Assembly (NCBI GenBank): GCA_002269645.1
Contig: NIVC01000059.1
Span: 1,302,001 to 1,366,000 of the forward strand
Length of the DNA: 64,000 bases
Reading direction: 5' to 3'
DNA from: Macrostomum lignano
Taxonomy: Eukaryota
Positions 1,940 to 61,500 of the stretch are shown in pieces. The stretch's first letter is position 1; every line of letters starts with the position of its first letter. Position numbers and translations under genes: made by a program. A model generated the notes under the pieces. That model saw only the letters and a list, made by a program, of their open reading frames with translations. It made no database searches and was not told the DNA's origin.

Positions 1940-2574
1940 AACTGAATTGCGAAATTGAAATGCTAGATATGTTCATGTACGCATGTGTACGTATATTGTT
2001 ACTAGTTAGTAGTCTATCAAGAAATTCAACAAGATATAAATTTATATTTATGATGTGGCCAACGCGCGCACGTGCATATCAATACCTGTTTTAAAAAATT
2101 AGAATAAACATTAAAATAATAATACTCGTAAATATATACTTTTTGAATTTTATTGAATATTAATTTCAATTAAAGACTCAGCTAACAAGATCAGATTATG
2201 CATTTTAGGACTACAAATGAGTCATGGCCGGTACAAAGTCACAAATTAATATTCGTTATAACATAAATATAATAAATTATTAATTTGATTTTAAAACCGG
2301 CATCCAAAAATATACACACTACACTTATCAGTAAAACACCACCATTAGAAGCAATTGAAGGAATTAAGCGCGATCTGCAGCTTAGAAAACCTCTTCTTCA
2401 TTTGGCATAAATTAGTTTTCAATAACCATTTCGCTTGGGAACTGGTTGCTTCCTACAGCTGCTGGTAGTGCATGTTGTGGGAAGAATCGTGAGGATCTTC
2501 GATTCGAAATCGACGTGTGCTCATGGCAAATCGGATCTGGCTGGGTTTTCTCTGGTACATGTATAATGCGTGTA

Positions 2575-3415
2575 AACCTCCCTTCTCTCAGCTCTCCTTT
2601 GCCTCCCTTTTCTTTCTCCCTTCTCTCTCCCTTGTCTCCCCCTTCTCTTTCCTTTCTCTCTCCCTTGTCTCCCCCTTCTCTTTCCCTTCTCTCTCCCTTG
2701 TCTCCCCCTTCTCTTTCCCTTCTCTCTCCCTTGCCTCCCCTTTCTCTTTCCCTTCTCTCTCCCTTGCCTCCCCTTTCTCTTTCCCTTCTCTCTCTCCCTT
2801 GTCTCCCCCTTCTCTTTCCCTTCTCTCTCCCTTGCCTCCCCTTTCTCTTTCCCTTCTCTCTCCCTTGTCTCCCCCTTCTCTTTCCCTTCTCTCTCCCTTG
2901 CCTCCCCTTTCTCTTTCCCTTCTCTCTCCCTTGTCTCCCCCTTCTCTTTCCCTTCTCTCTCCCTTGTCTCCCCCTTCTCTTTCCCTTCTCTCTCCCTTGT
3001 CTCCCCCTTCTCTTTCCCTTCTCTCTCCCTTGCCTCCCCTTTCTCTCTCCCTTCTCTCTCCCTTGTCTCCCCTTTTTCTCTCCCTTCTCTCTCCCTTGTC
3101 TCCCCCTTCTCTTTCCCTTCTCTCTCCCTTGTCTCCCCCTTCTCTTTCCCTTCTCTCTCTCCCTTGTCTCCCCCTTCTCTTTCCCTTCTCTCTCCCTTGT
3201 CTCCCCCTTCTCTTTCCCTTCTCTCTCCCTTGTCTCCCCCTTCTCTTTCCCTTCTCTCTCCCTTGTCTCCCCCTTCTCTTTCCCTTCTCTCTCCCTTGCC
3301 TCCCCTTTCTCTCTCCCTTCTCTCTCCCTTGTCTCCCCTTTTTCTCTCCCTTCTCTCTCCCTTGCCTCCCCTTTCTCTCTCCCTTCTTTCTTCTTTCTCT
3401 CTTCTCTCTCCCTTC
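2575..3415. repeat. CT-rich 33-bp minisatellite (cttgtctcccccttctctttcccttctctctcc)n
   Basis: Direct reading; explains the 11-aa-periodic ORFs in all frames. Confidence 0.95.
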
Positions 3416-4307
3416 CGTCTCCATCTCATCACCACTTATTCCATATTTCCATTAGTCTCCACTAATTAACCCGATCCCTGCAATCATTTTTACTGAATAC
3501 CCTCGTAGCCACATCTGTTCTTAAAACGAGAGCTAGAAAAGTATCCACGCAACAGAAAACTTGTATTATTGCCGGTTTTCTCATTACCAAAAAAATTAAC
3601 TAGAGACATCCAAGGTGCGCTAAGCAGAGGAGCAGTAAAGAGTGAGAAGAGAGAGTCAGTCACTCGCTCAATCGCCCTAGCTACCAGGCCAAATGCAACC
3701 TTAGTCAGGCAACTCAACCAATCTTATTGTCGACAAAAATTCACTATATATACATGCAGTAGGGGGATTTTGGGATTATTATTTCTCTACCTGGCGTTTC
3801 CAATTACACCACAGGCAGCCATGCTAGAGAGAGAGAGCTTGTGTGTTAGCCATCATCTCTAATACTAGATGTTTCTCATTTCTCATTTCCCAGCTGGCCA
3901 GCTACTCGTAGTTACAACCCCACACGATTGGCGATGCTCCATCTCTTTGCCCTGGGACCGCTCGTGTGGCCTGCACCCTGCTAAACTCCCAGCGCTGCTG
4001 GGCCTAAATAGTAATTAACTTGGCGATAATGAAAACTGGAGTGACGAATGAGGGACACAAGCGGCCGACTGCACCGAGGAGGCAGCCACCTATGGCGCCG
4101 GTCCGACACAAGCTTCTGTACACCTGACTGACCTAAAATGAAAAACCAAAAATGCTAAAACACCGAAGCACGTGGGTTTCTTAGCTTAGTCCTAGATGGA
4201 GGGCCGATTTTTCTCTCTCAAGACTGAACTTTAAGTGAAGTGAAATTTGTTTTGACAATAAGTTACTCTGCACATTTCTTCCAGACTGCACAGCTCACGA
4301 AACGGAT

Positions 4308-5982: not shown

Positions 5983-14746
<8,764 letters not shown>

Positions 14747-14995: not shown

Positions 14996-15519
14996 GCTCA
15001 AAGGTTGGCGACTGAGTGGTGTATGGGATGAGATCTGAGGCGCCTACTCAGCCGCACGCATATACAATATACAACACAATACAATTCAGAGATGCCGGTT
15101 TTTTACATTTCCATCAATAATTAATAATTCATAAAGCTATACAGATGAGTATTAGACTTAGACCATAATCTGCGCCGATGATAGGGTGGGGGACTATAAA
15201 AAAGATAAAAGATGAGAGAGAATTAGAAATTTAGCACGAACCCCCGGAACCCCGGGGCTAAGAACAATATCATAGCGGAGTGGATCCCTAAATGCCCACC
15301 TGTATAATTATCTACGCCAACCAAGTATAGCGAAGCTAGTGGCTGGCTGCAATATGCAACTGGCTCATCGTTTCTTTTTGGATTGCCGACTATATTCGTT
15401 CCAACTCTGTTGCCATCAAGTTTCTGTGCAGGCGAAAGGTTTCTCCTTTTTTTAAACAAAAATGCCTTTTTGACGGAACTTTTCAAAAGACCATTTTTTC
15501 GAGCAACGGGCCTAAGATC

Positions 15520-15900
15520 TGGGAGGCTGGCCCAAGCAACTGACACTGTGGGAGGCTGGCCCAAGCAACTGACACTGTGGGAGGCTGGCCCAGCAACTGA
15601 CACTCTGGGAGGCTGACCAAGCAACTGAGGATCTGGGAGGCTGGCCCAGCAACTGACACTGTGGGAGGCTGACCCAGCAACTGAGGATCTGGGAGGCTGG
15701 CCCAGCAACTGATACTGTGGGAGGCTGACCCAGCAACTGAGGATCTGGGAGGCTGGCCCAGCAACTGATACTGTGGGAGGCTGACCCAGCAACTGAGGAT
15801 CTGGGAGGCTGGCCCAGCAACTGAGGATCTGGGAGGCTGGCCCAGCAACTGAGGATCTGGGAGGCTGGCCCAGCAACTGAGGATCTGGGAGGCTGATCTG
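15520..15900. repeat. 28-bp minisatellite (ctgggaggctggcccagcaactgaggat)n between the KDM1B-like and prohormone-4 genes
   Basis: Direct reading. Confidence 0.95.
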
Positions 15901-16429
15901 GGAGTAGAGGTAAAAAATGAGACAAAGAAAATTTTAAATCTTTTTTGAATTATATAAGAGAGGCTTTCGTCAGATAAACTACAGGAATTGAGTTTATTAC
16001 AAAAATAATAAAAACGCTTAGCAGCTACTGTAAGTAGAAATGCGCAAATATAGTGTGCTGCCGGAACAGAAAAATGTGCAATCAAGTGACTTAAGGGTTT
16101 AGTTAAAAGAAAGTCAAATGGATTTATTCTACTTCCAGTAGTCAAATGGATAACCGAATTTATTTTTATTTTGCTTACAAAAGATGATGTAATAGAAAAA
16201 TGCAAAAGGAACACAGAACAACAAGAAAACACGATGAGAGTATGATTAAATTTACAGTACGCTCGTAGCAAGTGTCTTTAAAATGAAAATGGCTATCGCA
16301 ATAAACACAGAGAGAGAAACAGACCAGAGTCATTATTAAAGACGAGACAAAAGCATCCCAGCAACTATAAGCATTCTAGTGATTAAAACTAATGACAGTA
16401 GCAACCTGATCGACCTTAGCAGATCGAAT

Positions 16430-16690
16430 GCGCTTAGCAACTAAAAAAGAATCACCCTAGCAACTAAAGAAGAATCACCCTAGCAACTAAAGAAGCGCCC
16501 TAGCAACTAAAAAAGATTCACCTTAGCAACTAAAGAAGAATCACTCTAGCAACTGAAGAATAATCACCCTAGCAACTAAAGAAGCGCCCTAGCAACTAAA
16601 AAAGACTCACCCTAGCAACCAAGAAAGAATCACCATAGCAACTAAGAAAGAATCACCCTAGCAACCAGAAATACACACCCCAGCAACCGA
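16430..16690. repeat. ~23-bp repeat (ccctagcaactaaagaagaatca)n in the KDM1B-like 3' region
   Basis: Direct reading. Confidence 0.9.
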
Positions 16691-16741: not shown

Positions 16742-19700
16742 CTAGCAACGCTGCTCAGCCCGAAGCAGCACCCGCCTAGACCGAGCGTCCAGCCAGTCGG
16801 CCACCCGGCCAGCAGCGGCCAGTCCGCTGACGCAGGCGCCAGTCAGGCTGTGCGGAAACTCCTTCGATGCGGCTTCGCCGGCGAAGAACAACGGGCCGGC
16901 ATCGCCGTCGCCGTCGCAGTCGCCGCCGCTAGAGCAGCCGACGTCGGCTGAAAGTGCATCGGCGAATTCGGCGTCGCCAGTAGGCGACCATCGACCAGCG
17001 GCCGGGTAGGCGGCGGACCAGCTGCTCAGCGACGAATCGACGGGCGGTTCGGCAGATTCGCCGAATATTACGGCGAGTCGACGAGCGGCCTCTCTGGTGG
17101 CGTAGCCGAGCGGATCAGCCTGAGCTGCCAGATGTTCAACAGCCTTGCCGCAGAAGATCGCCAACAGCGGAAAGGCCGACGACGTTGATGGCGAATTGTC
17201 GCCAGCGACCGGGGACGGATCGACAAACAGGTGGCAGATGCCGCGACTTGTCGACGACTCCGGCAGGGTGGCAAAACATCGACTCGGCAGCCAGAATCGA
17301 CGTCGGAATCGAAGCCTCAGCGTCGACAAACGGCAGCAGCCGTGAGCGTCGGCCGCTCGCAGTTTAGAACTGGGCAGCGGCGGCTCGAACTTCGGACCGT
17401 CATTATCGTCGCCGGTCAGAAGACCCGACGGCGTTAGCGGCAGCGTCAACAGACAGCAGGCGGCGCGGATCCGACGCCCGTCTGTTAGCGACACTTCGAC
17501 GCCAGCGTCTGGCGAAGTCGAGGAGGCCGCCGGACGTCGACAGATCCGTGCGACGGCGGAACCGCACAGCAGCGGAACCGTCCGCGAGCCGGCAGCCAGC
17601 CAGTCGGCCAGGTCGGCCAGAGTGTCGACTTCGACAATCGCTGAATTGTCGCTTAGTTGCGGCAGAATTTTGTCGCGCTCGAACGGCAACGTCGAGGCGG
17701 CGGATACTAGATTGAGTGGGGCGCCTAATCTGTACTCTAAACTGGCCAGGTAGAAATTTAATAATCTGGCGCCTTGCTCCGAACTGGCGGTCATCGCGTC
17801 TAACAGACTCTGCTCGTCGATTTGCGTCGAAACTGATACGTCATCACTTTCGATTGGTGCCGACACAAATCCGGTTGGATTCGAGCTATTTTCGGTAAGA
17901 TTGGATTCCTTTGCAGTGGGATTTGATTTACTTCCGGTAGAATTGGGTTCACTTCCGGTAGGATTGGCTTCACTTCCGGTAGGATTGGCTTCAGTTCCGG
18001 TAGGATTTGCTTCAGTTCCGGTATGATTGGATTCACTTCCGGTGGGATTGGCTTCACTTCCGGTGGGATAGGCTTCACTTCCGGTAGGAATAGATTTACT
18101 TCCTGTTGCATCATAATTCGCAGCATCGGATTCGACAAAGAAGCTAACAGCTTCACTTCCCGTTGCCCGAGCCTTTCGCCTAGCTGACGCGTAGACTCGC
18201 TTAGCGGACGCCGCGGTGAGTGCCTCAGTAACGACATCGACAGCTTGACAGACCACGTCGGACTCCACCGCGATCCGACCGCCGTCGGGCCAATCGAACA
18301 GGTCTACGTTCAGCAACGGATTATCCTCCAGACTAAGGACGCCGCTGTGGCCGATGCCCCGCTGCAGTGCCATCAGACACAACGGGTTATTCGACACACT
18401 GTCGACAACAGCAACGTCGGGTAAACGACGTCGCCGACGACTATTTCCTTTGTCGTTATCCTTATCGTCGTTGTTGGTCGATTCAATCAGAACGACGCGT
18501 CGGCCAAAGTTGACCAGCTGCCGAGCCGCCGCCAGTCCCGCAATGTCGTCGCCGAAAATAACGACATCGGCGACACTAGCGTCGTCGGAATCGCCGTCGT
18601 CGCCGTCAGCAGCATCGGGAGCGACAGGTCGGACGCCGAAATTAATAAGGCCCAGACGTTCTAATCGACGAATAATAGCCGGCAAAATGGCCGAACAGAT
18701 CCGAATCCTGGCCAGGCCTCTACATAGGATTAACGATTCGGAGCGTCGACTGTCAGCAATAGTTGGCCAATCGGCTGGTGTCCGAGACGATGATTGAGCC
18801 AGCGTCGAGTGCCAGATGGCCCAGGCGGCTAGTAGAGTATTGCGCACTGCCAGGTACAGCTGCGGCTGGTTGCGCAGCTCCAACTGGCCAGCTGGGTAGG
18901 CGGCGGCAAGTTCGTCGGGATCGACCTGGTCGGGCCGGACCGACAAAGCCGAGCGGCTCGAAGAAGCGGCCGAGGACTGGCCGAAAGAGAACAGGCCGCT
19001 GGCGAACGGGTGGAGCTGGGACGGCGAATCTAAGGGACGGCGGGGAGGAGGGGAAGAGGTGATTTAGTTGTTGACTGAATTCGGACACCGCTGATGAGGT
19101 TTAGAGTCTGGGCCTCCTCATCCACTTCCTCTATCTTCCAGACTCCTAAAATTTCCCATTCCTACATGTACCTCCGTTCCCTACATGTAGCTCACCATCC
19201 TTACATCTACCTCACCATTCCTACATCTATCTCACCATCCCTACATCTACCTTACCATCCCTACATCTACCTCACCATTCCTACATCTATCTCACCATCC
19301 CTACATCTACCTCACCATCCCTACATCTATCTCACCATCCCTACATCTACCTTACCATCCCTACATCTACCTCATTATCCCTACATCTACCTTACCATCC
19401 CTACATCCGCCTCTCGAAGCCTACATCCGCCTCTCGATCCCTACATCCGCCTCTCGAACCCTACATCCGCCTCTCGATCCCTACATCCGCGTCTCGATCC
19501 CTACATCCGCCTCTCGATCCCTACATCCGCCTTTCGAACCCTACATCCGCCTCTCGAACCCTACATCCGCCTCTCGATCCCTACATCCGCCTCTCGAAGC
19601 CTACATCCGCTTTCGATCCCTACATCTGCCTCCCGAACCCTACATCCGCCTCTTGAACCCTACATCCGCTCCTCGATCCCTACATCCGCCTCTCGATCCC

Positions 19701-20684
19701 TACATCCGCCTCTCGATCCCTACATCCGCCTCCCGAACCCTACATCCGCCTCTCGAACCCTACATCCACCTCTCGATCCCTACATCTGCCTCCCGATCCC
19801 TACATCTGCCTCCCGATCCCTACATCCGCCTCTCGATCCCTACATCTGCCTCCCGAAGTAGGAGGGCTGTTGGAAAACGCCTTCGGCGACACCGTCCCAC
19901 CACACAGGGTGTACAGCAGCCCTGACAAGCCCCAAAATGAATGTGGCCAGGAATCGAACCAGGGGACGCATTTACCGCTAAGCCCTACCAATCAGCTGAT
20001 CACCGGGCAGAGGCGCCAGACCAACGCTTAAAGGCCTGCAGCCGTACAACTTGGAGTCAAACAGCAGCAGCCTTCTACAGCAGTTGTCCTGCAGCAGCAC
20101 AGGAACAGCCAGGCTGGATAGAAAGTCAGGATCCGACGCCGCCCAAGCCACGCCCGGGTGTTCGGGTTCGTCGCAATTACTGCATCGAAACTCTAACAGA
20201 CGCCTTGGCAACAAGTTATAATCGTTATCGCTATTACAATCCGAGCCAGTGTCTAATTGTCTCCACCGGCCGCAGTCTCGACAAGAGGCCCAGTAGGGCA
20301 GTGCGGCGTTAGCCAGCAGTTCCCTGGGGCTGGGCTGGCGGCACTCCGCACGCAACCAGGCCGATCTGAGCTGAGCAACCCAACTAGGCGCCCATTCGTT
20401 GGCCAACCGGCCTCGATAGCACAGCTCGAAACAGGCGTTGCAATAGTGTTCCCACCTGCTCAGGTGGTACCAACGCGACGTTTTCGAATTAGATTCTGTT
20501 GCTATAGCGACGCAACGAGACGATAGGCGGGCGAAACAGACCGGTTGAGACTCGCCGCAACCAGATTTTGTGCAGCCTTCGAGAGCACCGCGGCTGCCGA
20601 CGAAGTCAGAGCTATCGGGTTCGCGTTTGCGCTTCTGAAGACAGATATTTGGTCTGTGTTTCTTAGAAACAGTGGGCTGCGATC
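16742..20684 (-). CDS. KDM1B: KDM1B/LSD2-like protein (C4H2C2 zinc finger, CW zinc finger, SWIRM, amine-oxidase fold), ~990 aa; start codon unresolved; catalytic motifs degenerate
   Basis: Exons ~20684-19989 (alternative donor gives 20004) and 19029-16742. CTKSGC...PVCFA...RC...TSRWYHLSRWEHYCNACFE (C4H2C2 finger), LPYWASCRDCGRWRQL...C..PE (zf-CW), ALSVRPDQ...LYLAVRNTLLAAW...RGLARIR...LERLGLINFG (SWIRM), LNFYLASLEYRLG, LFFAGEAASKEFPHSLTGACVSGL all align with LSD2 as I recall it. Confidence 0.9.
19190..19860. repeat. 20-bp minisatellite with two sub-arrays (cctacatctacctcaccatc, then cctacatccgcctctcgatc) in the KDM1B-like intron
   Basis: Direct reading. Confidence 0.95.
19865..19989 (-). mobile_element. 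tRNA-derived SINE family B, 5' part
   Basis: Minus strand ggtagggcttagcgg (A-box-like)...ggttcgattcc (B box)...cattcatttt...agggctgctgtacaccctgtgtg, shared with 60560-60690. Confidence 0.7.
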
Positions 20685-20734
20685 CTAGATAAGAGATGAG
20701 CAGCCGGTCTGGATGAGATGAGACAGTGCAGGTG

Positions 20735-21700
20735 AGAATGTGAGCAGGAAATCTAGGTGAGATTAAAAGCGAGCAGCCAGTCCATGTGCGAATAGATGTG
20801 AGCAGGAAATCTAGGTGAGATTAGAAGCGAGCAGGAAATCTAGGTGAGAATAGATGTGAGCGGGAAATCTAGGTGAGAATAGATGTGAGCGGGAAATCTA
20901 GGTGAGAATAGATGTAAGAAGGAAATTTAGGTGAGACTAGATGTAAGCAGGAAATCTAGGTGAGAATAGATGTGATAAGGAAATCTAGGTGAGAATAGAT
21001 GTAAGCAGGAAATCTAGGTGAGAATAGATGCGAGCGAAAAATCTAAGAGAGAATAGATGTAAGTAGGAAATCTAGGTGAAAATAGATGTAAGCAGGAAAT
21101 CTAGGTGGGACTAGATGTAAGAAGGAAATTTAGGTGAGAATAGATGTGAGAAGGAAATCTAAGTGAGAATAGATGTGAGCGGGAAATCTAAGTGAGAATA
21201 GATGTGAGCGGGAAATCTAGGTGAGAATAGATGTGAGCGGGAAATCTAGGTGAGAATAGATGTGAGCGGGAAATATACGTGAGAATAGATGTGAGAAGGA
21301 AATCTAGGTGAGAATAGATGTGAGAAGGAAATCTATGTGAGAATAGATGTGAGCGGGAAATATACGTGAGAATCGATGTGAGTAGGAAATCTAGGTGAGA
21401 CTAGATGTGAGCAGGAAATCTATGTGAGAATAGATGTGAGCGGGAAATATACGTGAGAATAGATGTGAGCGGGAAATCTAGGTGAGAATAGATGTGAGCG
21501 GGAAATCTAGGTGAGAATAGATGTGAGCGGGAAATATACGTGAGAATCGATGTGAGAAGGAAATCTAGGTGAGACTAGATGTGAGCAGGAAATCTAGGTG
21601 AGAATAGATGTGAGAAGGGAATTTAGGTGAGACTAGATGTAAGCAGGAAATCTAGGTGAGAATAGATGTGAGCGGGAAATCTAGGTGAGAATAGATGTGC
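20735..21700. repeat. 29-bp minisatellite (gcgggaaatctaggtgagaatagatgtga)n between GAPDH and the KDM1B-like ORF
   Basis: Direct reading. Confidence 0.95.
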
Positions 21701-22538: not shown

Positions 22539-24738
<2,200 letters not shown>

Positions 24739-26582: not shown

Positions 26583-40506
<13,924 letters not shown>

Positions 40507-45500: not shown

Positions 45501-48500
45501 CACTGAGGCTCCATCATAGCCTTGGCCAACTAGAAATCCGGTGTCTAGGCCATATTTCTGAAGGCTTTCTCTAATAGTGAGTTAGCAAGTGATTGGGCAG
45601 ATAGTCCTGAAGCAGGTTTAAATTCCATAAAGACTTCCTGCACTCCTTCTGAATGCTTGTAGAAACAAATGATTAAGGAGATCATTTCAACCTTAGAAAT
45701 ATCCTTGGCCTCATCTACAATCACAGAAAAATATTTGGCTTCTTGGATGTCGTTTACAACATCACAGACCATGTCTGCCAGAATGTTAATAACTTCATTT
45801 TGAATTGTGTCACTCGTGTACTTTGCATTCTTCTTCTGTTCAGATATCTTCTTCTTTATTATTTCGTCGTGCCTGCCAATCAGCTTCAATAATGCTTTGA
45901 AGTTTCCAAGATTTACTTGCTCATCATTTTCGCGATGCCCCCTTTGGGCAATGTTTTGAGTTGCTGTAAGAAGTAATACTTCTCCTACACACTTAATGAA
46001 GTGCCTGTTCTCAGCTACCTTAGCTTTGTACGTAGCATCAAGCTGTTTCAATACAGTTCCTTCAGTGTCTTTCATTACTTTGTAGTCACACTATGCTTGC
46101 ATTGCTAAACTGTGGCAATGAGAGCAGGCATGCTTTTTAAAGCCTGCATCCTGACACTGAGCATTTTTCCAGTTGCGGAATCCCTGAGTAGTAAAAGATG
46201 GCTCTTCTTGCATAGATGGAGGCGCGAAGTGGCGGCAGGGAAAGCAAAAAGCAGAATCCTTCATTTGCAAATACTCAAGCCACTTGTAAGTCTCAAACCA
46301 CGAGAATTGAAATGAACAGGACTTTTGCTTTGCCTTATCCGTTCCTGTGGAGGATTTTTACCAATAACTTAAAAAATACGTCTATATAGCTATATCAGTA
46401 TAGCTAGCCTTAGCCACTAGCACTAGCCACTAGTAACCATTAGCACAAACAGTATTATGTAAATAACTGTCCACTTACCGCCTGAAGTTCCAACTGATTT
46501 TGGGTAGTTCCGCAAAAATGGCTGACAGGGTGGATTGTCCTTATTCTAGGAAATATCACACGGGGCCTTCGAAGAAGGTTGCTCAATCGTTCTACTGTCT
46601 GAGGCTGACTCCGTGGCAGTGGCAGCGGTAGCTGTCTCAACTAGAACAGGAGTGCCAGGAAAATTTGTTTCAGAGCCAGTCAGTTGAGCATCCTGTTCAG
46701 ACTCCTGATCCGCAATCGTAAAGATGGCGCTTGGTTAATCCTTATGCCTTTTTGCCTGGCTATCGTTTTTTTTGCCTGGACCTTCATCTTCTCGCGGGTC
46801 TGAACTAGGTCTTTTTAGAAAACTTCGAATATCAGGCCTCTGCATTGTTGGCTTGGCCAGGCTTCTTTAATTCAATTCTTGAAACACATTTCAGTTTTGT
46901 TTGAACCTTAAGACTTTAAGAGAGTAGTAGCTAAAGTGTGACTTAAATCTTGAGGGGCAGAGGGGCAATGCTCTGTAGTCTTTTACACATTGTCTGAATG
47001 TATGATGGTTTAACTCTTTGTCCCTATCGAAATGTACATTTATCAGCGCCCTTCTCCCTTCCCTTTCTGTCTGTCCTATCCCTCCTTTCCCTGTCCTAGT
47101 GCAAGTGTTAGGCGTTGGGGAGGGGGTTGGGGGTTGGAAGGATACAGCCATATAGACTGAACAGTTAGATAAAACAATAAAGTCTGAGAGGCGATGCACT
47201 TTGTAATTAAAGTTAGAGACAAAACCAAAACACCAACAGATACTATAAAAACAAACGAAACAAATTTGCCATACTATCAGATCACTGAGATCAGAAAGTA
47301 AAGAATAATGTACCCATGTACAGTTATGCTCGTGTAAAAACTTCTAGTATAGTAGTATTGTTTCTAAAATTAAAATTTATAAAAATAAAAAAAGTTTTGA
47401 AAACTAAAAGTGGGGGGGCCACAGGGGGGCCTGTGGCCTAATAGGGGGGCCCAGGCCCCCCCTGGCCCCCCCTTGGACGGGCCACTGAATGAGACAAGAG
47501 CAAGGCAGTGGTTCAACTGGTTAATGAGTTTATAGAATAATGTTATTGGAATCTAGAAGAAGAAGATTCGTGAAGAGATTCCAGCTGAGCTGCTTTATAT
47601 TTATAGTGTTGAGATGATCTTCTGGAAAGTTCTAGAAATATATAATGCATTATAACAAAATGATTGTTAAGAAAATACTGCTAGTTATTTATCGCTAGTT
47701 TTACCCACAGACTGCGAATACTCGTTAATTATTAAATATATTAAAATGCAGTAAATGAGATTTTGTTTCAGACATAGAACTTTCTAGAAAACGTACAAAT
47801 AGAAATTTCTCGAAAGTCACTACATGTTATTCCGCACATTATTCTGTACATTATTCCGCATGTTATTCCACATGTTATTCCCCACATTATTCAGCATGTT
47901 ATTCCACACATTATTTGGTACATTATTCTGCACGTTATTCTGCATGTTATTCTGCATGTTACTATAGGCATTTTTCCACAATGTTCTGTATAAAATTTAA
48001 TAGTAATTTTTCCATTTTGATACATTTCAAATGTAAAGCGAAAGCCTACATGTACATGAGCTTGTTGTTATATTTTCCTGGATTGCGAGAACATTATTCA
48101 TAAAATTATATAAATTGACTGCAACAGAGTACTGTAGTTGCAGAGTTGTAAGTTGAGTTAGAGTTGCATGCACAGAGGCAAGGTCCTGGAGAGCATACAT
48201 GTGCAACAGTCGGCCGAGTCGGCCGATCCGACCGACTGATTTGGCGGCCAACCATGGAAGTTGCAAAAATGCCCATGCAAAAAACACCAAGTAGTAGTAC
48301 TAAGTAGCTGACAAGGCATTTTGGCTTTATAAGACAGTCATAGTTACTCCTGCCGTTTACCCAAAGTTGCGTTAATTGCGTTTTTTACATGTAAGTCACA
48401 TTTTTGTTAAAACTAAGTCGCACGGCCGACCGAATTTTGGAGGTCGCGCATGTATGCCAGAGAGGTTAGAGAAAAAGAAGATAAGAGTGACTACTTTTTA

Positions 48501-58514: not shown

Positions 58515-61500
58515 TCACAGTTCCTGGGTGATGCAGTTCAGCTGCTGTTGCTGTTGTTCGGCTCTGAGCAGCCAATGCGCTGGCACCATCACTAATCCAC
58601 TGGCGATTAGGCTGCAACCGCACACCAGGAAAGGTACGTCAAATGATGATGTCCAGTCGTATAGCAGGCCTGCGTATGTAGTGAAGTGTCGAGGTGACTG
58701 ACGGATTCAATTTAGCTAGTGGCAGGGTGACAACAAAGAAAAAAACAACAAAGTCATCAGCTTAGCTACATACCAGCCAAAGGCGGTCCAGCCAGCACGC
58801 CAACTCCTTGAAACAGCAGCGTCAGGCCGAACGAATCGCTGAGCTTGTCGATGCCGACCAGGTCAACCAGGACGGGTGACGTCAGCGTCACGAATGAGCC
58901 TGTGCAGAGCGTCACCATGGATTTTATGGTGGAGGGGGGGACAAAGCCAATAATTAAATAATGTACATGTACATGACAAGTCTTACATGTACATTATTTT
59001 CAGAATCGGTGTTGTCAGCACTCATTTTAGCGCCGCAGGCACTCATTTTAGCGCTGCAGGCACTCATTTTAGCGCCTCGAACACTCAATTTAGCGCCTTG
59101 AACACTCATTTTAGCGCCTCGAACACTCAATTTAGCGCAGCAGGCACTCATTTTAGCGCCGCAGGCACTCATTTTAGCGCCGCAGGCACTCATTTTAGCG
59201 CCTCGAACACTCAATTTAGCGCCTTGAACACTCATTTTAGCGCCTCGAACACTCAATTTAGCGCAGCAGGCACTCATTTTAGCGCCGCAGGCACTCATTT
59301 TAGCGCCGCAGGCACTCATTTTAGCGCCTCGAGCACTCATTTTAGCGCCGCAGGCACTCATTTTAGCGCCTCGAGCACTCATTTTAGCGCCGCAGGCACT
59401 CATTTTAGCGCCTCGAGCACTCATTTTAGCGCCGCAGGCACTCATTTTAGCGCCGCAGGCACTCATTTTAGCGCCGCAGGCACTCATTTTAGCGCCGCAG
59501 GCACTATGTATTGTCTCCCTGCAGCAAAATTATTGATTTCCATAGCGGTTCACAAGTTGGGGTTGGGAGACAAAGCATCGGCATGTCCCAACCCAGATCT
59601 TTTACTGGGGGGGGGGGACATGTCCCCCCCCCCGTTGGCGACGCCGCTGACTGCCTGCGTAGGATTTTCGAATGCAGTCTTCTTCCATCAAATTGCATCA
59701 ATCTATCTCAGAATGTAGATATACTGTATATCAATTTATCTCACCGGAGAACAGACCGAAGGCGGCACAGCAGGCGGCGCTGAAGGCGTATTCATCGGAC
59801 AGGCAGCTGATGGCCAGAGCCGCTCCAGACACCGCCAGGGATGCCCAGTACAGCTGCAGCCGCCGACTGTCTGCGCCCCGGTCTGACAGCCAGCCGAACC
59901 CCAGCCGGCCCACAGTGTTGGCGCCGCCAATCACCGACACCAGCAGGGCGCTCTCGGTGTCCTCGTGTCCGGCCTGCTGCGCCCTGTCCGGAGTGTAGAT
60001 GTACGGCGCATTGAAGCCGATGCTGCACAGCAAATTTGATAGCAGGAACAGCAGGAAAACCGGTTTAGTCAGCAGCTCCAAGTTGAAAAATTTCTGCGCA
60101 TCTGCAGACTCTGCCGTCGTTGTCGCTGCGCCGCTGGAATCGGCGCCTGCAGCGGCCGAGCCAGGAGTAGTGCCGGCTGCTGGCACGGAGGTGAGGCTGG
60201 TGATGGAGCGGACGAACTGCACCGGTCGACTCACGTTAGTGAGACTGGCGCTGGTCAGATGGTGATGACGCTGCTGATGATGCGGCGGCTGCAGCAGAGC
60301 CTGAGATCGCGGCTGGCCCTGCACTCGCGGCCGCATGTCTTGCACGGACAGGAAATCAGCGACCGCTGGAATCGGCTGCTGCAACATCTGCTGCTGCTGC
60401 TGCTTGCTGTTGCCGTCTCTTAGAAGCTGATCATTGTCGGCCACGTCAGCGACGGAAGAGTTGGTTCTGAATTGGGAGCCAGGCAAGAATGGCTGAGACT
60501 TGAGTAATTCTGCTCATTCCGCTGACTCCTGAGCACATGCAAGCGCACCAATGCTGTCCGCAGACACGCACTCATGCTCACGCTCACACAGGGTGTACAG
60601 CTGCCCTTTTGACTTTCTAATCGTTTCTCGAGCCTCAAATGAATGCTGGGCCGCGGATCGAACGCCCGTAGCTACGCTTCTCTACACAATTTTAAAGTAG
60701 CTAGGCTAAATATAGCAACCCATGCAGTGGCATTAAAAATGAGCCTGGACAGGAGGTCAAGGAGCTACACGAAAACTAGTTTGAGCTTCTAGCACCAACA
60801 GTCCAAAATGTACTTTGCTGTCTCGTTCCCTGGTGGCAGCATCGTCGTCAGCAGCAGCGACCGGCCGCCGTCGTCGCCACCTTCGTCAGCCGACGCTCGA
60901 CGAACAATGGGTAGCGGATGCGGCGACGACGGCGACAGCAATTGATGACGACGTCCAGGAGTCGGCAGCGGCGTCGTCTTGTCGTTGTCATTGTCGATGT
61001 CGATGTCGATTTCGGGCTGATTAGCCTCTAGCTGTTTCTCCGGAGGCGACTGATCTGTCGACGATGAAGAAGATAAAATCTGGTCGAGTTTGAACGGTCG
61101 GAACAGAGCAGCGAATACGGCGCACTGGAGCACGGCGGCAGATAGTATGAGCATGGTCCCTCTCCAGGTGTACTCGCGCAACAGGAAGCTAATTAGCGGG
61201 CTCATCGCCAGAGTGCCTGGATTGCATTTTGAAGGTGACAGATTGTAAGGGGCTGGGTGGTTCAGGAGATATGTACACTGGGTAAGAGATTCTGGATGTT
61301 AGGGTGGGTGGCTCAGGAGTAATGTACACTGGGTGAGAGATTGGGGTGTGTGGTTTGTTAGTCATGTACACTGGGTGAGAGATTGGGGTGTGTGGTTTGT
61401 TAGTCATGTACACTGGGTGAGAGATTGGGGTGGGTGGTTTGTTAGTCATGTACACTGGGTGAGAGATTGGGGTGTGTGGTTTGTTAGTCATGTACACTGG

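Follow-up and report, generated by a model that had tools for sequence, protein, structure and literature searches.

A KDM1B homolog of Macrostomum lignano that has lost its cofactor and catalytic motifs is probably a selectively maintained pseudoenzyme

A 64,000-nucleotide stretch of DNA from the free-living flatworm Macrostomum lignano (contig NIVC01000059.1, positions 1,302,001 to 1,366,000; referred to as the window in the rest of the text) carries the minus-strand locus BOX15_Mlig019979g2, whose 975-aa product PAA92271.1 is described in GenBank as "hypothetical protein, partial". Sequence comparison indicates that this locus is a descendant of KDM1B (LSD2), a histone H3K4me1/2 demethylase of the flavin adenine dinucleotide (FAD)-dependent LSD family. 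We found that its product is an enzyme homolog deprived of key catalytic and cofactor residues, that its reading frame is under purifying selection and that its annotation derives from transcripts, the features expected of a pseudoenzyme. We infer that the gene is probably a transcribed, spliced and selectively maintained KDM1B pseudoenzyme, inactive as a demethylase and acting as a non-catalytic chromatin-binding or recruiting scaffold.

The longest continuous open reading frame (ORF) of the gene, 734 codons at 16742-18946 (minus strand, as are all features of the gene given below), is 100% identical to part of PAA92271.1, and the coding sequence (CDS) rebuilt from the window by tblastn of the protein and splicing reproduced PAA92271.1 exactly. 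Exon 1 (20628-19989) is 5'-partial, lacking an ATG, and codes for residues 1-213 together with base 1 of codon 214. Exon 2 (16742-19029) codes for residues 214-975 and ends with the stop codon TAG at 16742-16744. The two exons are separated by a 959-nt GT-AG intron (19030-19988; donor ATTG/GTAGGG, acceptor CCCTTAG/AT, slashes marking the junctions), which contains stops in all frames and consists mostly of a 20-nt tandem repeat (19197-19856, 33 copies). A first-pass annotation, made by reading the DNA alone, had described an ORF open for ~990 codons. This does not hold, as the genomic ORF spans 734 codons and a 975-codon CDS is obtained only after removal of the intron; the annotated CDS begins at 20628, not at 20684. 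Since the GenBank gene models of this assembly were derived from a genome-guided transcriptome (PMC5730564), a spliced transcript underlies the gene model.

HMMER comparison with PDB sequences returned human KDM1B/LSD2 as the best match (E-value 9e-28). In an exhaustive phmmer search over 1.84 billion representative proteins, the best non-self matches were KDM1B proteins from many phyla and the top named matches were all KDM1B. The best of them, a frog KDM1B, matches at 33% identity and 194 bits; in comparisons of normal KDM1Bs between phyla, scores are about 700-790 bits. Word-indexed protein searches using either the 734-aa ORF or the N-terminal 397 aa yielded little of use (plant LSD1-like proteins and one fish KDM1B), because the protein is too divergent and its repeat insert absorbs the candidates. 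Pfam recognized an Amino_oxidase domain (E-value 2e-23), and the amine-oxidase fold, which lacks a Tower, is nearer to that of KDM1B than to that of KDM1A; Foldseek agreed. For the latter comparison, an AlphaFold2 model (predicted template modelling score 0.76) was built from a MAFFT alignment of 28 sequences comprising the M. lignano protein and its 27 best homologs. The model is confident in the zinc fingers, in SWIRM and in most of the oxidase fold. Its top Foldseek matches were full-length LSD2 structures (E-values 1e-41 to 1e-36, target-normalised template modelling score 0.77-0.79), ahead of LSD1 (about 0.6). The assignment to LSD2/KDM1B made by the first-pass annotation is thus supported by sequence (HMMER, phmmer) as well as by predicted fold.

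The amine-oxidase-like domain (16790-18574, residues 366-960) retains its fold and has lost its cofactor and catalytic residues. Strongly conserved columns were defined by at least 85% agreement among 20 full-length KDM1Bs, with leave-one-out scoring for the others. The M. lignano domain keeps 52 of 85 such columns and alters the remaining 33, while the 20 other KDM1Bs keep 84-100% of them, except for one mite protein at 74%. The Pfam Amino_oxidase profile scores 83.6 bits and the NAD_binding_8 profile 12.3 bits, below its cut-off of 21.9 bits, compared to 209-271 and 31-52 bits, respectively, in four normal KDM1Bs.

These changes fall on the hallmarks of the enzyme. The dinucleotide-binding motif G-A-G-x-x-G is degenerate: 18536-18553 reads GGCGACGACATTGCGGGA, that is, G-D-D-I-A-G, in which the second Gly of GxGxxG is lost. 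HMMER comparison with the PDB aligned VVIFGDDIAGLAAARQL to human LSD2 VIIIGAGPAGLAAARQL, MAFFT giving equal columns, and it also aligned IESTNNDDKDNDKG to LSD2 LEAKDRIGGRVWDD. The RxGGR pyrophosphate loop is replaced by TNNDDKDNDKGNSRRRRR (18425-18478; HMMER, MAFFT), a stretch (NDDKD...RRRRR) with a predicted local distance difference test score (pLDDT) below 50 at residues 401-413 and with 5 of 21 residues differing between the genomic copies of the gene described below. The GAQ strand column reads V-A-V, and the substrate-cleft loop W-D-x-N-E has become F-E-R-D-K (17669-17683, residues 663-667; W to F663, D to E664). The segment GCCRLSTLRLRFRRRFW (17291-17341) aligns gap-free to human LSD2 GAGIIEKIALQFPYRFW in HMMER and places Thr783 (codon ACG, 17321-17323) at the catalytic-Lys column, the preceding conserved Glu being Ser. 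Finally, FADALSADV (16940-16966) stands for (A/S)YS(F/Y)V in MAFFT, with A-L-S-A for Y-S-(F/Y), and the active-site Tyr is lost. Among the other homologs, the nucleotide-binding turn reads G-[AS]-G throughout, and GGR, GAQ, WDxNE, E-K and YS[YF] are present in nearly all; in M. lignano both GxGxxG and RxGGR are absent (GDDIAG, NNDDKD), as are the catalytic Lys and the active-site Tyr. Three claims of the first-pass annotation were therefore borne out: GDDIAG at 18536-18553, for which both coordinates and reading are exact; the replacement of R-x-GGR by an acidic and Arg-rich stretch, seen in HMMER and MAFFT; and a Thr at the position of catalytic Lys661, its coordinates (17321-17323) again exact, both methods giving Thr783 and no alignment putting a Lys there.

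In the family, the FAD diphosphate is flanked by the GGR loop and by the second Gly of GxGxxG, the catalytic Lys positions a water at flavin N5, the Tyr lines the pocket for the substrate lysine and the WDxNE loop grips the H3 tail. FAD-contact residues were assigned from such family knowledge and from conservation in the alignment. The C-terminal flavoprotein motif FFAGEAASKEFPHSLTGACVSG (16823-16888) is retained, its F, A, G and E being invariant in the alignment. The domain also carries a disordered insert (17807-18145, residues 509-621; pLDDT about 30) containing an in-frame 21-nt repeat (17893-18103, found with Tandem Repeats Finder) that codes for PTGSEAN heptads. We take this insert to lie between the helices bordering the Tower insertion of LSD1.

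The N-terminal modules contrast with the oxidase domain: relative mean identity (M. lignano to the others divided by the others among themselves) is 0.89-0.94 for these modules and 0.64 for the oxidase domain, and only 4 of their 42 strongly conserved columns are altered. The C4H2C2 zinc finger (20431-20574; ligands C19, C24, C31, C39, H55, H61, C63 and C66; pLDDT 80-90) conserves all eight ligand columns relative to the 27 KDM1B homologs and all 13 strongly conserved columns. In the zf-CW module (20173-20295), W113, C116, C119, W122, C149 and C152 align and 9 of 10 conserved columns are retained. The SWIRM domain (18632-18952, residues 240-346) aligns to the SWIRM of LSD2 in both HMMER and MAFFT, keeps 16 of 19 conserved columns, is modelled at pLDDT about 80-93 and carries a lineage-specific insertion of 11 residues.

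Two further genomic copies of the gene lie on other contigs (PAA57689.1, locus L001; PAA61658.1, locus L002). These two are nearly identical to each other, and their proteins diverge by about 5% from that of the window copy. The three copies have collinear flanks, with GAPDH upstream and a protein with an LDL-receptor class A match downstream; all have open reading frames of 975-993 codons and conserved GT-AG splice sites. The intron at the equivalent position in L001 and L002 measures 771 nt, and the number of 21-nt repeats is variable, both loci carrying 63 nt more (three extra units) than the window copy. All three copies share GDDIAG, the Thr and the other replacements without change; the losses are therefore older than the duplication, after which the frame has been maintained.

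The strength of selection was estimated by the Nei-Gojobori method from the ratio of non-synonymous to synonymous divergence (dN/dS) between the window copy and L001. The two differ by 44 non-synonymous and 51 synonymous changes (dN 0.021, dS 0.072, dN/dS 0.29), and both the whole gene (binomial P = 9e-9) and the oxidase domain alone (dN/dS 0.36, P = 5e-4) depart significantly from neutrality. By region, dN/dS was 0.10 in the zinc-finger exon, 0.18 in the linker and SWIRM, 0.35 and 0.37 in the two halves of the oxidase domain and 0.43 in the repeat insert. The collinear non-coding flanks contain 0.81 gap openings per 100 nt. About 24 indels would be expected in the CDS at the flank rate, or about 12 after scaling to CDS substitutions, while two were observed, of 63 nt and 6 nt; each lies in a repeat and preserves the frame (Poisson P = 2e-8 and 8e-4, respectively). 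The dN/dS of 0.29 between copies, the indel deficit, the three open copies and the transcript-derived model agree with the first-pass proposal that the gene is kept by selection and is not a decaying pseudogene. No ortholog from another Macrostomum species was found among the protein collections searched.

This gene's 5' end may depend on trans-splicing. In-frame extension upstream of exon 1 (window positions 20629-20820, and further upstream to about 21700) met a stop without any preceding ATG. In M. lignano the spliced leader is 35 nt long with an ATG at its end (PMC8629364), and ~30-39% of M. lignano genes are trans-spliced (PMC8629364, PMC5730564). All three copies keep an in-frame AG acceptor, GTTTCTAAG/AAACAC, a short distance upstream of exon 1. 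Because the leader ends in ATG and this acceptor is conserved, the start codon of the window gene may be supplied by the trans-spliced leader. Another in-frame candidate acceptor, TTCAG/AAG just 5' of exon 1, was rejected since both other copies read TTCTG/AAA.

An intact M. lignano KDM1B was not seen among the 14 organism-named proteins of the 18 next-best phmmer matches (E-value ≤ 1e-27; four are nameless). The 14 include no flatworm and come from frog, gastropods, a nemertean, a sea cucumber, a sponge, an octopod, bivalves, a millipede, a tick, nematodes and an annelid. The second, intact KDM1B whose search had been suggested was thus missing among identified protein matches at this threshold. 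In the annotated M. lignano proteome searched, no KDM1B-type gene was seen apart from the three copies of this degenerate one; an unannotated copy in the genome sequence itself would lie outside that search.

Changes at the catalytic-Lys column were also observed in KDM1Bs of other animals. The protein of Argonauta hians (GAB1611014.1, P0017) reads GAGIIETVVLKF, with Thr at this column and NSLETQ in place of RxGGR, and that of Octopus vulgaris (P0187) reads GAGVIEMIVLQF, with Met at this column and GGR intact. The mite Tropilaelaps mercedesae (P0036) has Gln and keeps 74% of the conserved oxidase-domain columns, and a scallop KDM1B retains E-K. The octopod and mite proteins keep GxGxxG and score as normal KDM1Bs. 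Judging from these sequences, loss of the catalytic Lys may be recurrent in KDM1B evolution.

Because residues of both the cofactor site and the catalytic site are replaced, the protein most likely neither binds FAD nor demethylates. Acidic or bulky residues (G-D-D-I-A-G, NDDKD for RxGGR and D/V for the G-A of the GAQ strand) would occupy the sites of the FAD diphosphate and ADP moieties, where Asp375 and Asp402/Lys403/Asp404, with Asp374 and Asp418 nearby, should repel FAD. The protein likewise has neither the catalytic Lys nor the active-site Tyr, and its WDxNE histone-tail loop is lost. Selection would then preserve the C4H2C2/zf-CW/SWIRM assembly, the oxidase-like domain could serve as a structural platform against which it packs, and the protein as a whole would be a non-catalytic chromatin-binding or recruiting scaffold.

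Several observations weigh against this proposal. The modules that the first-pass annotation had called intact do keep their ligands and KDM1B-specific columns but are divergent, scoring below the Pfam gathering cut-offs for both zf-CW (17.3 bits, cut-off 27.5, 33-44 bits in four normal KDM1Bs) and SWIRM (12 bits, cut-off 28.6, 32-43 bits in the normal proteins). Flavoprotein elements remain in the oxidase domain: strand 2 still ends in Glu (LIES), and both FFAGE and the TLPL strand are kept, which leaves non-canonical cofactor binding a small probability on sequence grounds. LSD1 K661A retains about 20% activity on nucleosomes (PMC9803847), which makes the replacement of Lys by Thr the weaker argument and the loss of the dinucleotide-binding motifs the stronger one. 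The dN/dS estimates span only the recent divergence of the copies (dS 0.07), the oxidase-domain value of 0.36 is fairly relaxed, and the contrast between N-terminal modules and oxidase domain is only a trend (Fisher's P = 0.086). The gene model lacks a start codon, has no Met among residues 1-432 and has a provisional 5' end, and the RNA evidence is not assignable to this particular copy. As the input alignment is made of normal KDM1Bs, the structural model would give an LSD2 fold regardless, and it indicates compatibility with that fold rather than independent proof of it. The whole case is built by sequence-based inference on one annotated "hypothetical protein".

Other explanations account for parts of these data. 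The oxidase-like domain could have acquired a new ligand or partner, such as nucleic acid or an acidic protein contacting RRRRR and RLRFRRRF, with FAD no longer bound and with selection acting on this role instead of a purely structural one. The significant departure of its dN/dS below 1 fits such a role, as do the charged clusters that the replacements add (NDDKDNDKGNSRRRRR and LRLRFRRRFW) and the lineage-specific disordered heptad-repeat insert, which we take to lie at the Tower site of LSD1. However, the loop that replaces RxGGR is among the fastest-changing stretches between the copies and is predicted to be disordered, which would make it a poor binding site, and the present analysis points to no partner or ligand; we regard a new role of this kind as unlikely. 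Alternatively, demethylase or amine-oxidase activity might persist, with FAD bound in a non-canonical manner, in line with the Glu after strand 2, FFAGE, the TLPL strand, the overall fold and the partial activity of LSD1 K661A on nucleosomes (PMC9803847). This would require that five independent cofactor, catalytic and substrate elements be altered together without loss of function, three of the five changes being Asp at positions which, from family knowledge, face the FAD diphosphate. The 27 closest homologs keep these motifs, the partial changes of the octopods and the mite aside, and the Rossmann-type profiles fall below threshold in M. lignano, all of which makes an active enzyme quite improbable.

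The absence of a start codon from the annotated model, the high divergence of the protein (194 bits for the best non-self match, against about 700 for normal KDM1Bs) and the tandem repeats that have spread into intron, flanks and the CDS itself would suit a pseudogene, or a set of copies, caught before disabling mutations and transcribed incidentally. Set against this are the dN/dS of 0.29 (P = 9e-9), two in-frame indels where 12-24 were expected, the open frames of 975-993 codons with intact splice sites on three contigs, and the M. lignano spliced leader, whose terminal ATG could provide the missing start codon (PMC8629364); we consider a pseudogene very improbable. Nor do we find it credible that the odd motifs stem from chimeric or mis-assembled sequence. 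Even though the Mlig_3_7 assembly is repeat-rich and redundant (PMC5730564), equal motifs are present on three contigs with collinear flanks, and the changes are substitutions inside gap-free alignments instead of junctions. A selectively maintained, non-catalytic KDM1B derivative thus remains our preferred interpretation. Catalytic decay following loss of DNA methylation was also considered, the annelid Dimorphilus having lost KDM1B in a proposed link with lost DNA methylation (PMC12153100). It was rejected, since M. lignano keeps DNMT1, DNMT3 and low-level 5-methylcytosine (PMC11292947, PMC9246332).

The DNA around the gene is rich in tandem arrays. A 29-nt unit is repeated 33 times upstream (20738-21699), and arrays of 23-nt and 28/56-nt units (16435-16665 and 15516-15896) and of 27/53-nt units (14554-14698) lie downstream. 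Such arrays generate long spurious ORFs on both strands, for instance 19094-19861 (plus strand) and 15223-16271 (minus strand). The GAPDH gene is directly upstream at about 22900-24735 (minus strand; Gp_dh_N, E-value 7e-40 in the ORF 24151-24735), and the Cys-rich protein with the LDL-receptor class A match is encoded downstream at 8615-10414. Farther away, the ORF 45545-46075 (minus strand) matches DUF4371 (E-value 3e-14), a domain found in transposase-derived proteins, and an exon-like ORF at 59731-60486 (minus strand) matches the Major Facilitator Superfamily (E-value 3e-9). GC skew is extreme in parts of the window: -0.50 at 2001-4000, about +0.41 to +0.44 at 8001-12000 and +0.54 at 32001-34000. 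Long ORFs overlap one another on both strands in these skewed blocks, which suggests low-complexity or repeat DNA.

If the proposal is correct, M. lignano would provide a natural separation of functions in the LSD family. Splitting the catalytic from the scaffolding roles of LSD proteins is an open problem, because engineered mutants regarded as "dead" are still partly active, as is the case for LSD1 K661A (PMC9803847); in M. lignano, function would be independent of catalysis by construction. One could go further and suppose that, with the only KDM1B-type gene of this animal coding for an FAD-less protein, DNMT1 and DNMT3 still present and the catalytic Lys also replaced in octopod KDM1Bs, the constrained part of the LSD2 job is a non-catalytic chromatin or recruitment function of its zinc-finger/SWIRM/oxidase-fold assembly and demethylation is dispensable in some animal lineages, a generalization that we advance tentatively and consider doubtful. 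The case is relevant, too, to how KDM1B is connected with de novo DNA methylation, given that M. lignano, in contrast to planarians and parasitic flatworms, has kept DNMT1 and DNMT3 (PMC11292947, PMC9246332). The species is tractable, with established transgenesis (PMC5730564) and gene knock-down studies. Our literature searches on BOX15_Mlig019979g2 and on flatworm KDM1B returned nothing on this gene, and the literature searched contained no account of an equivalent pseudoenzyme arisen naturally among the FAD-dependent LSD proteins.

The M. lignano protein shares with human KDM1B/LSD2/AOF1 (PDB 4GU0, 4HSU, 4FWE, 7XE1-3) the order C4H2C2, zf-CW, linker, SWIRM and amine-oxidase-like domain, without a folded Tower. 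It is only 23-24% identical to the human protein in structural alignments, and it alone carries the disordered repeat insert (509-621) and the 11-residue SWIRM insertion. From human to M. lignano, GAGPAG reads GDDIAG, DRIGGR reads NNDDKD, K661 is Thr, WDHNE is FERDK and the Tyr of AYSF is lost. The octopod KDM1Bs resemble it in the replacement of the catalytic-Lys column (Thr in Argonauta, Met in Octopus) and, for Argonauta, in the lack of GGR. They differ in that GxGxxG is intact, the Rossmann profiles score above threshold, and identity to other KDM1Bs is 40-45% at about 700 bits, so that decay is far less extensive in the octopods than in M. lignano. An analogous case outside the family is JARID2, a catalytically inactive JmjC relative that has kept a demethylase fold for non-catalytic chromatin roles; its fold and its Fe/2-oxoglutarate cofactor are different, and it has no homology to the LSD proteins. 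Within the family, scaffolding functions of LSD1 have been described (PMC9803847), and PMC11241480 cites Yang et al. 2010 for a demethylase-independent repression by vertebrate KDM1B that needs the N-terminal zinc-finger region. LSD1/KDM1A and Schizosaccharomyces pombe Lsd1/Lsd2 likewise have chromatin roles without catalysis (PMC9803847, PMC7226997, PMC11241480). Those cases, however, rely on engineered point mutants of active enzymes, whereas the loss in M. lignano is natural and genomically fixed and affects many sites, those of cofactor binding among them.

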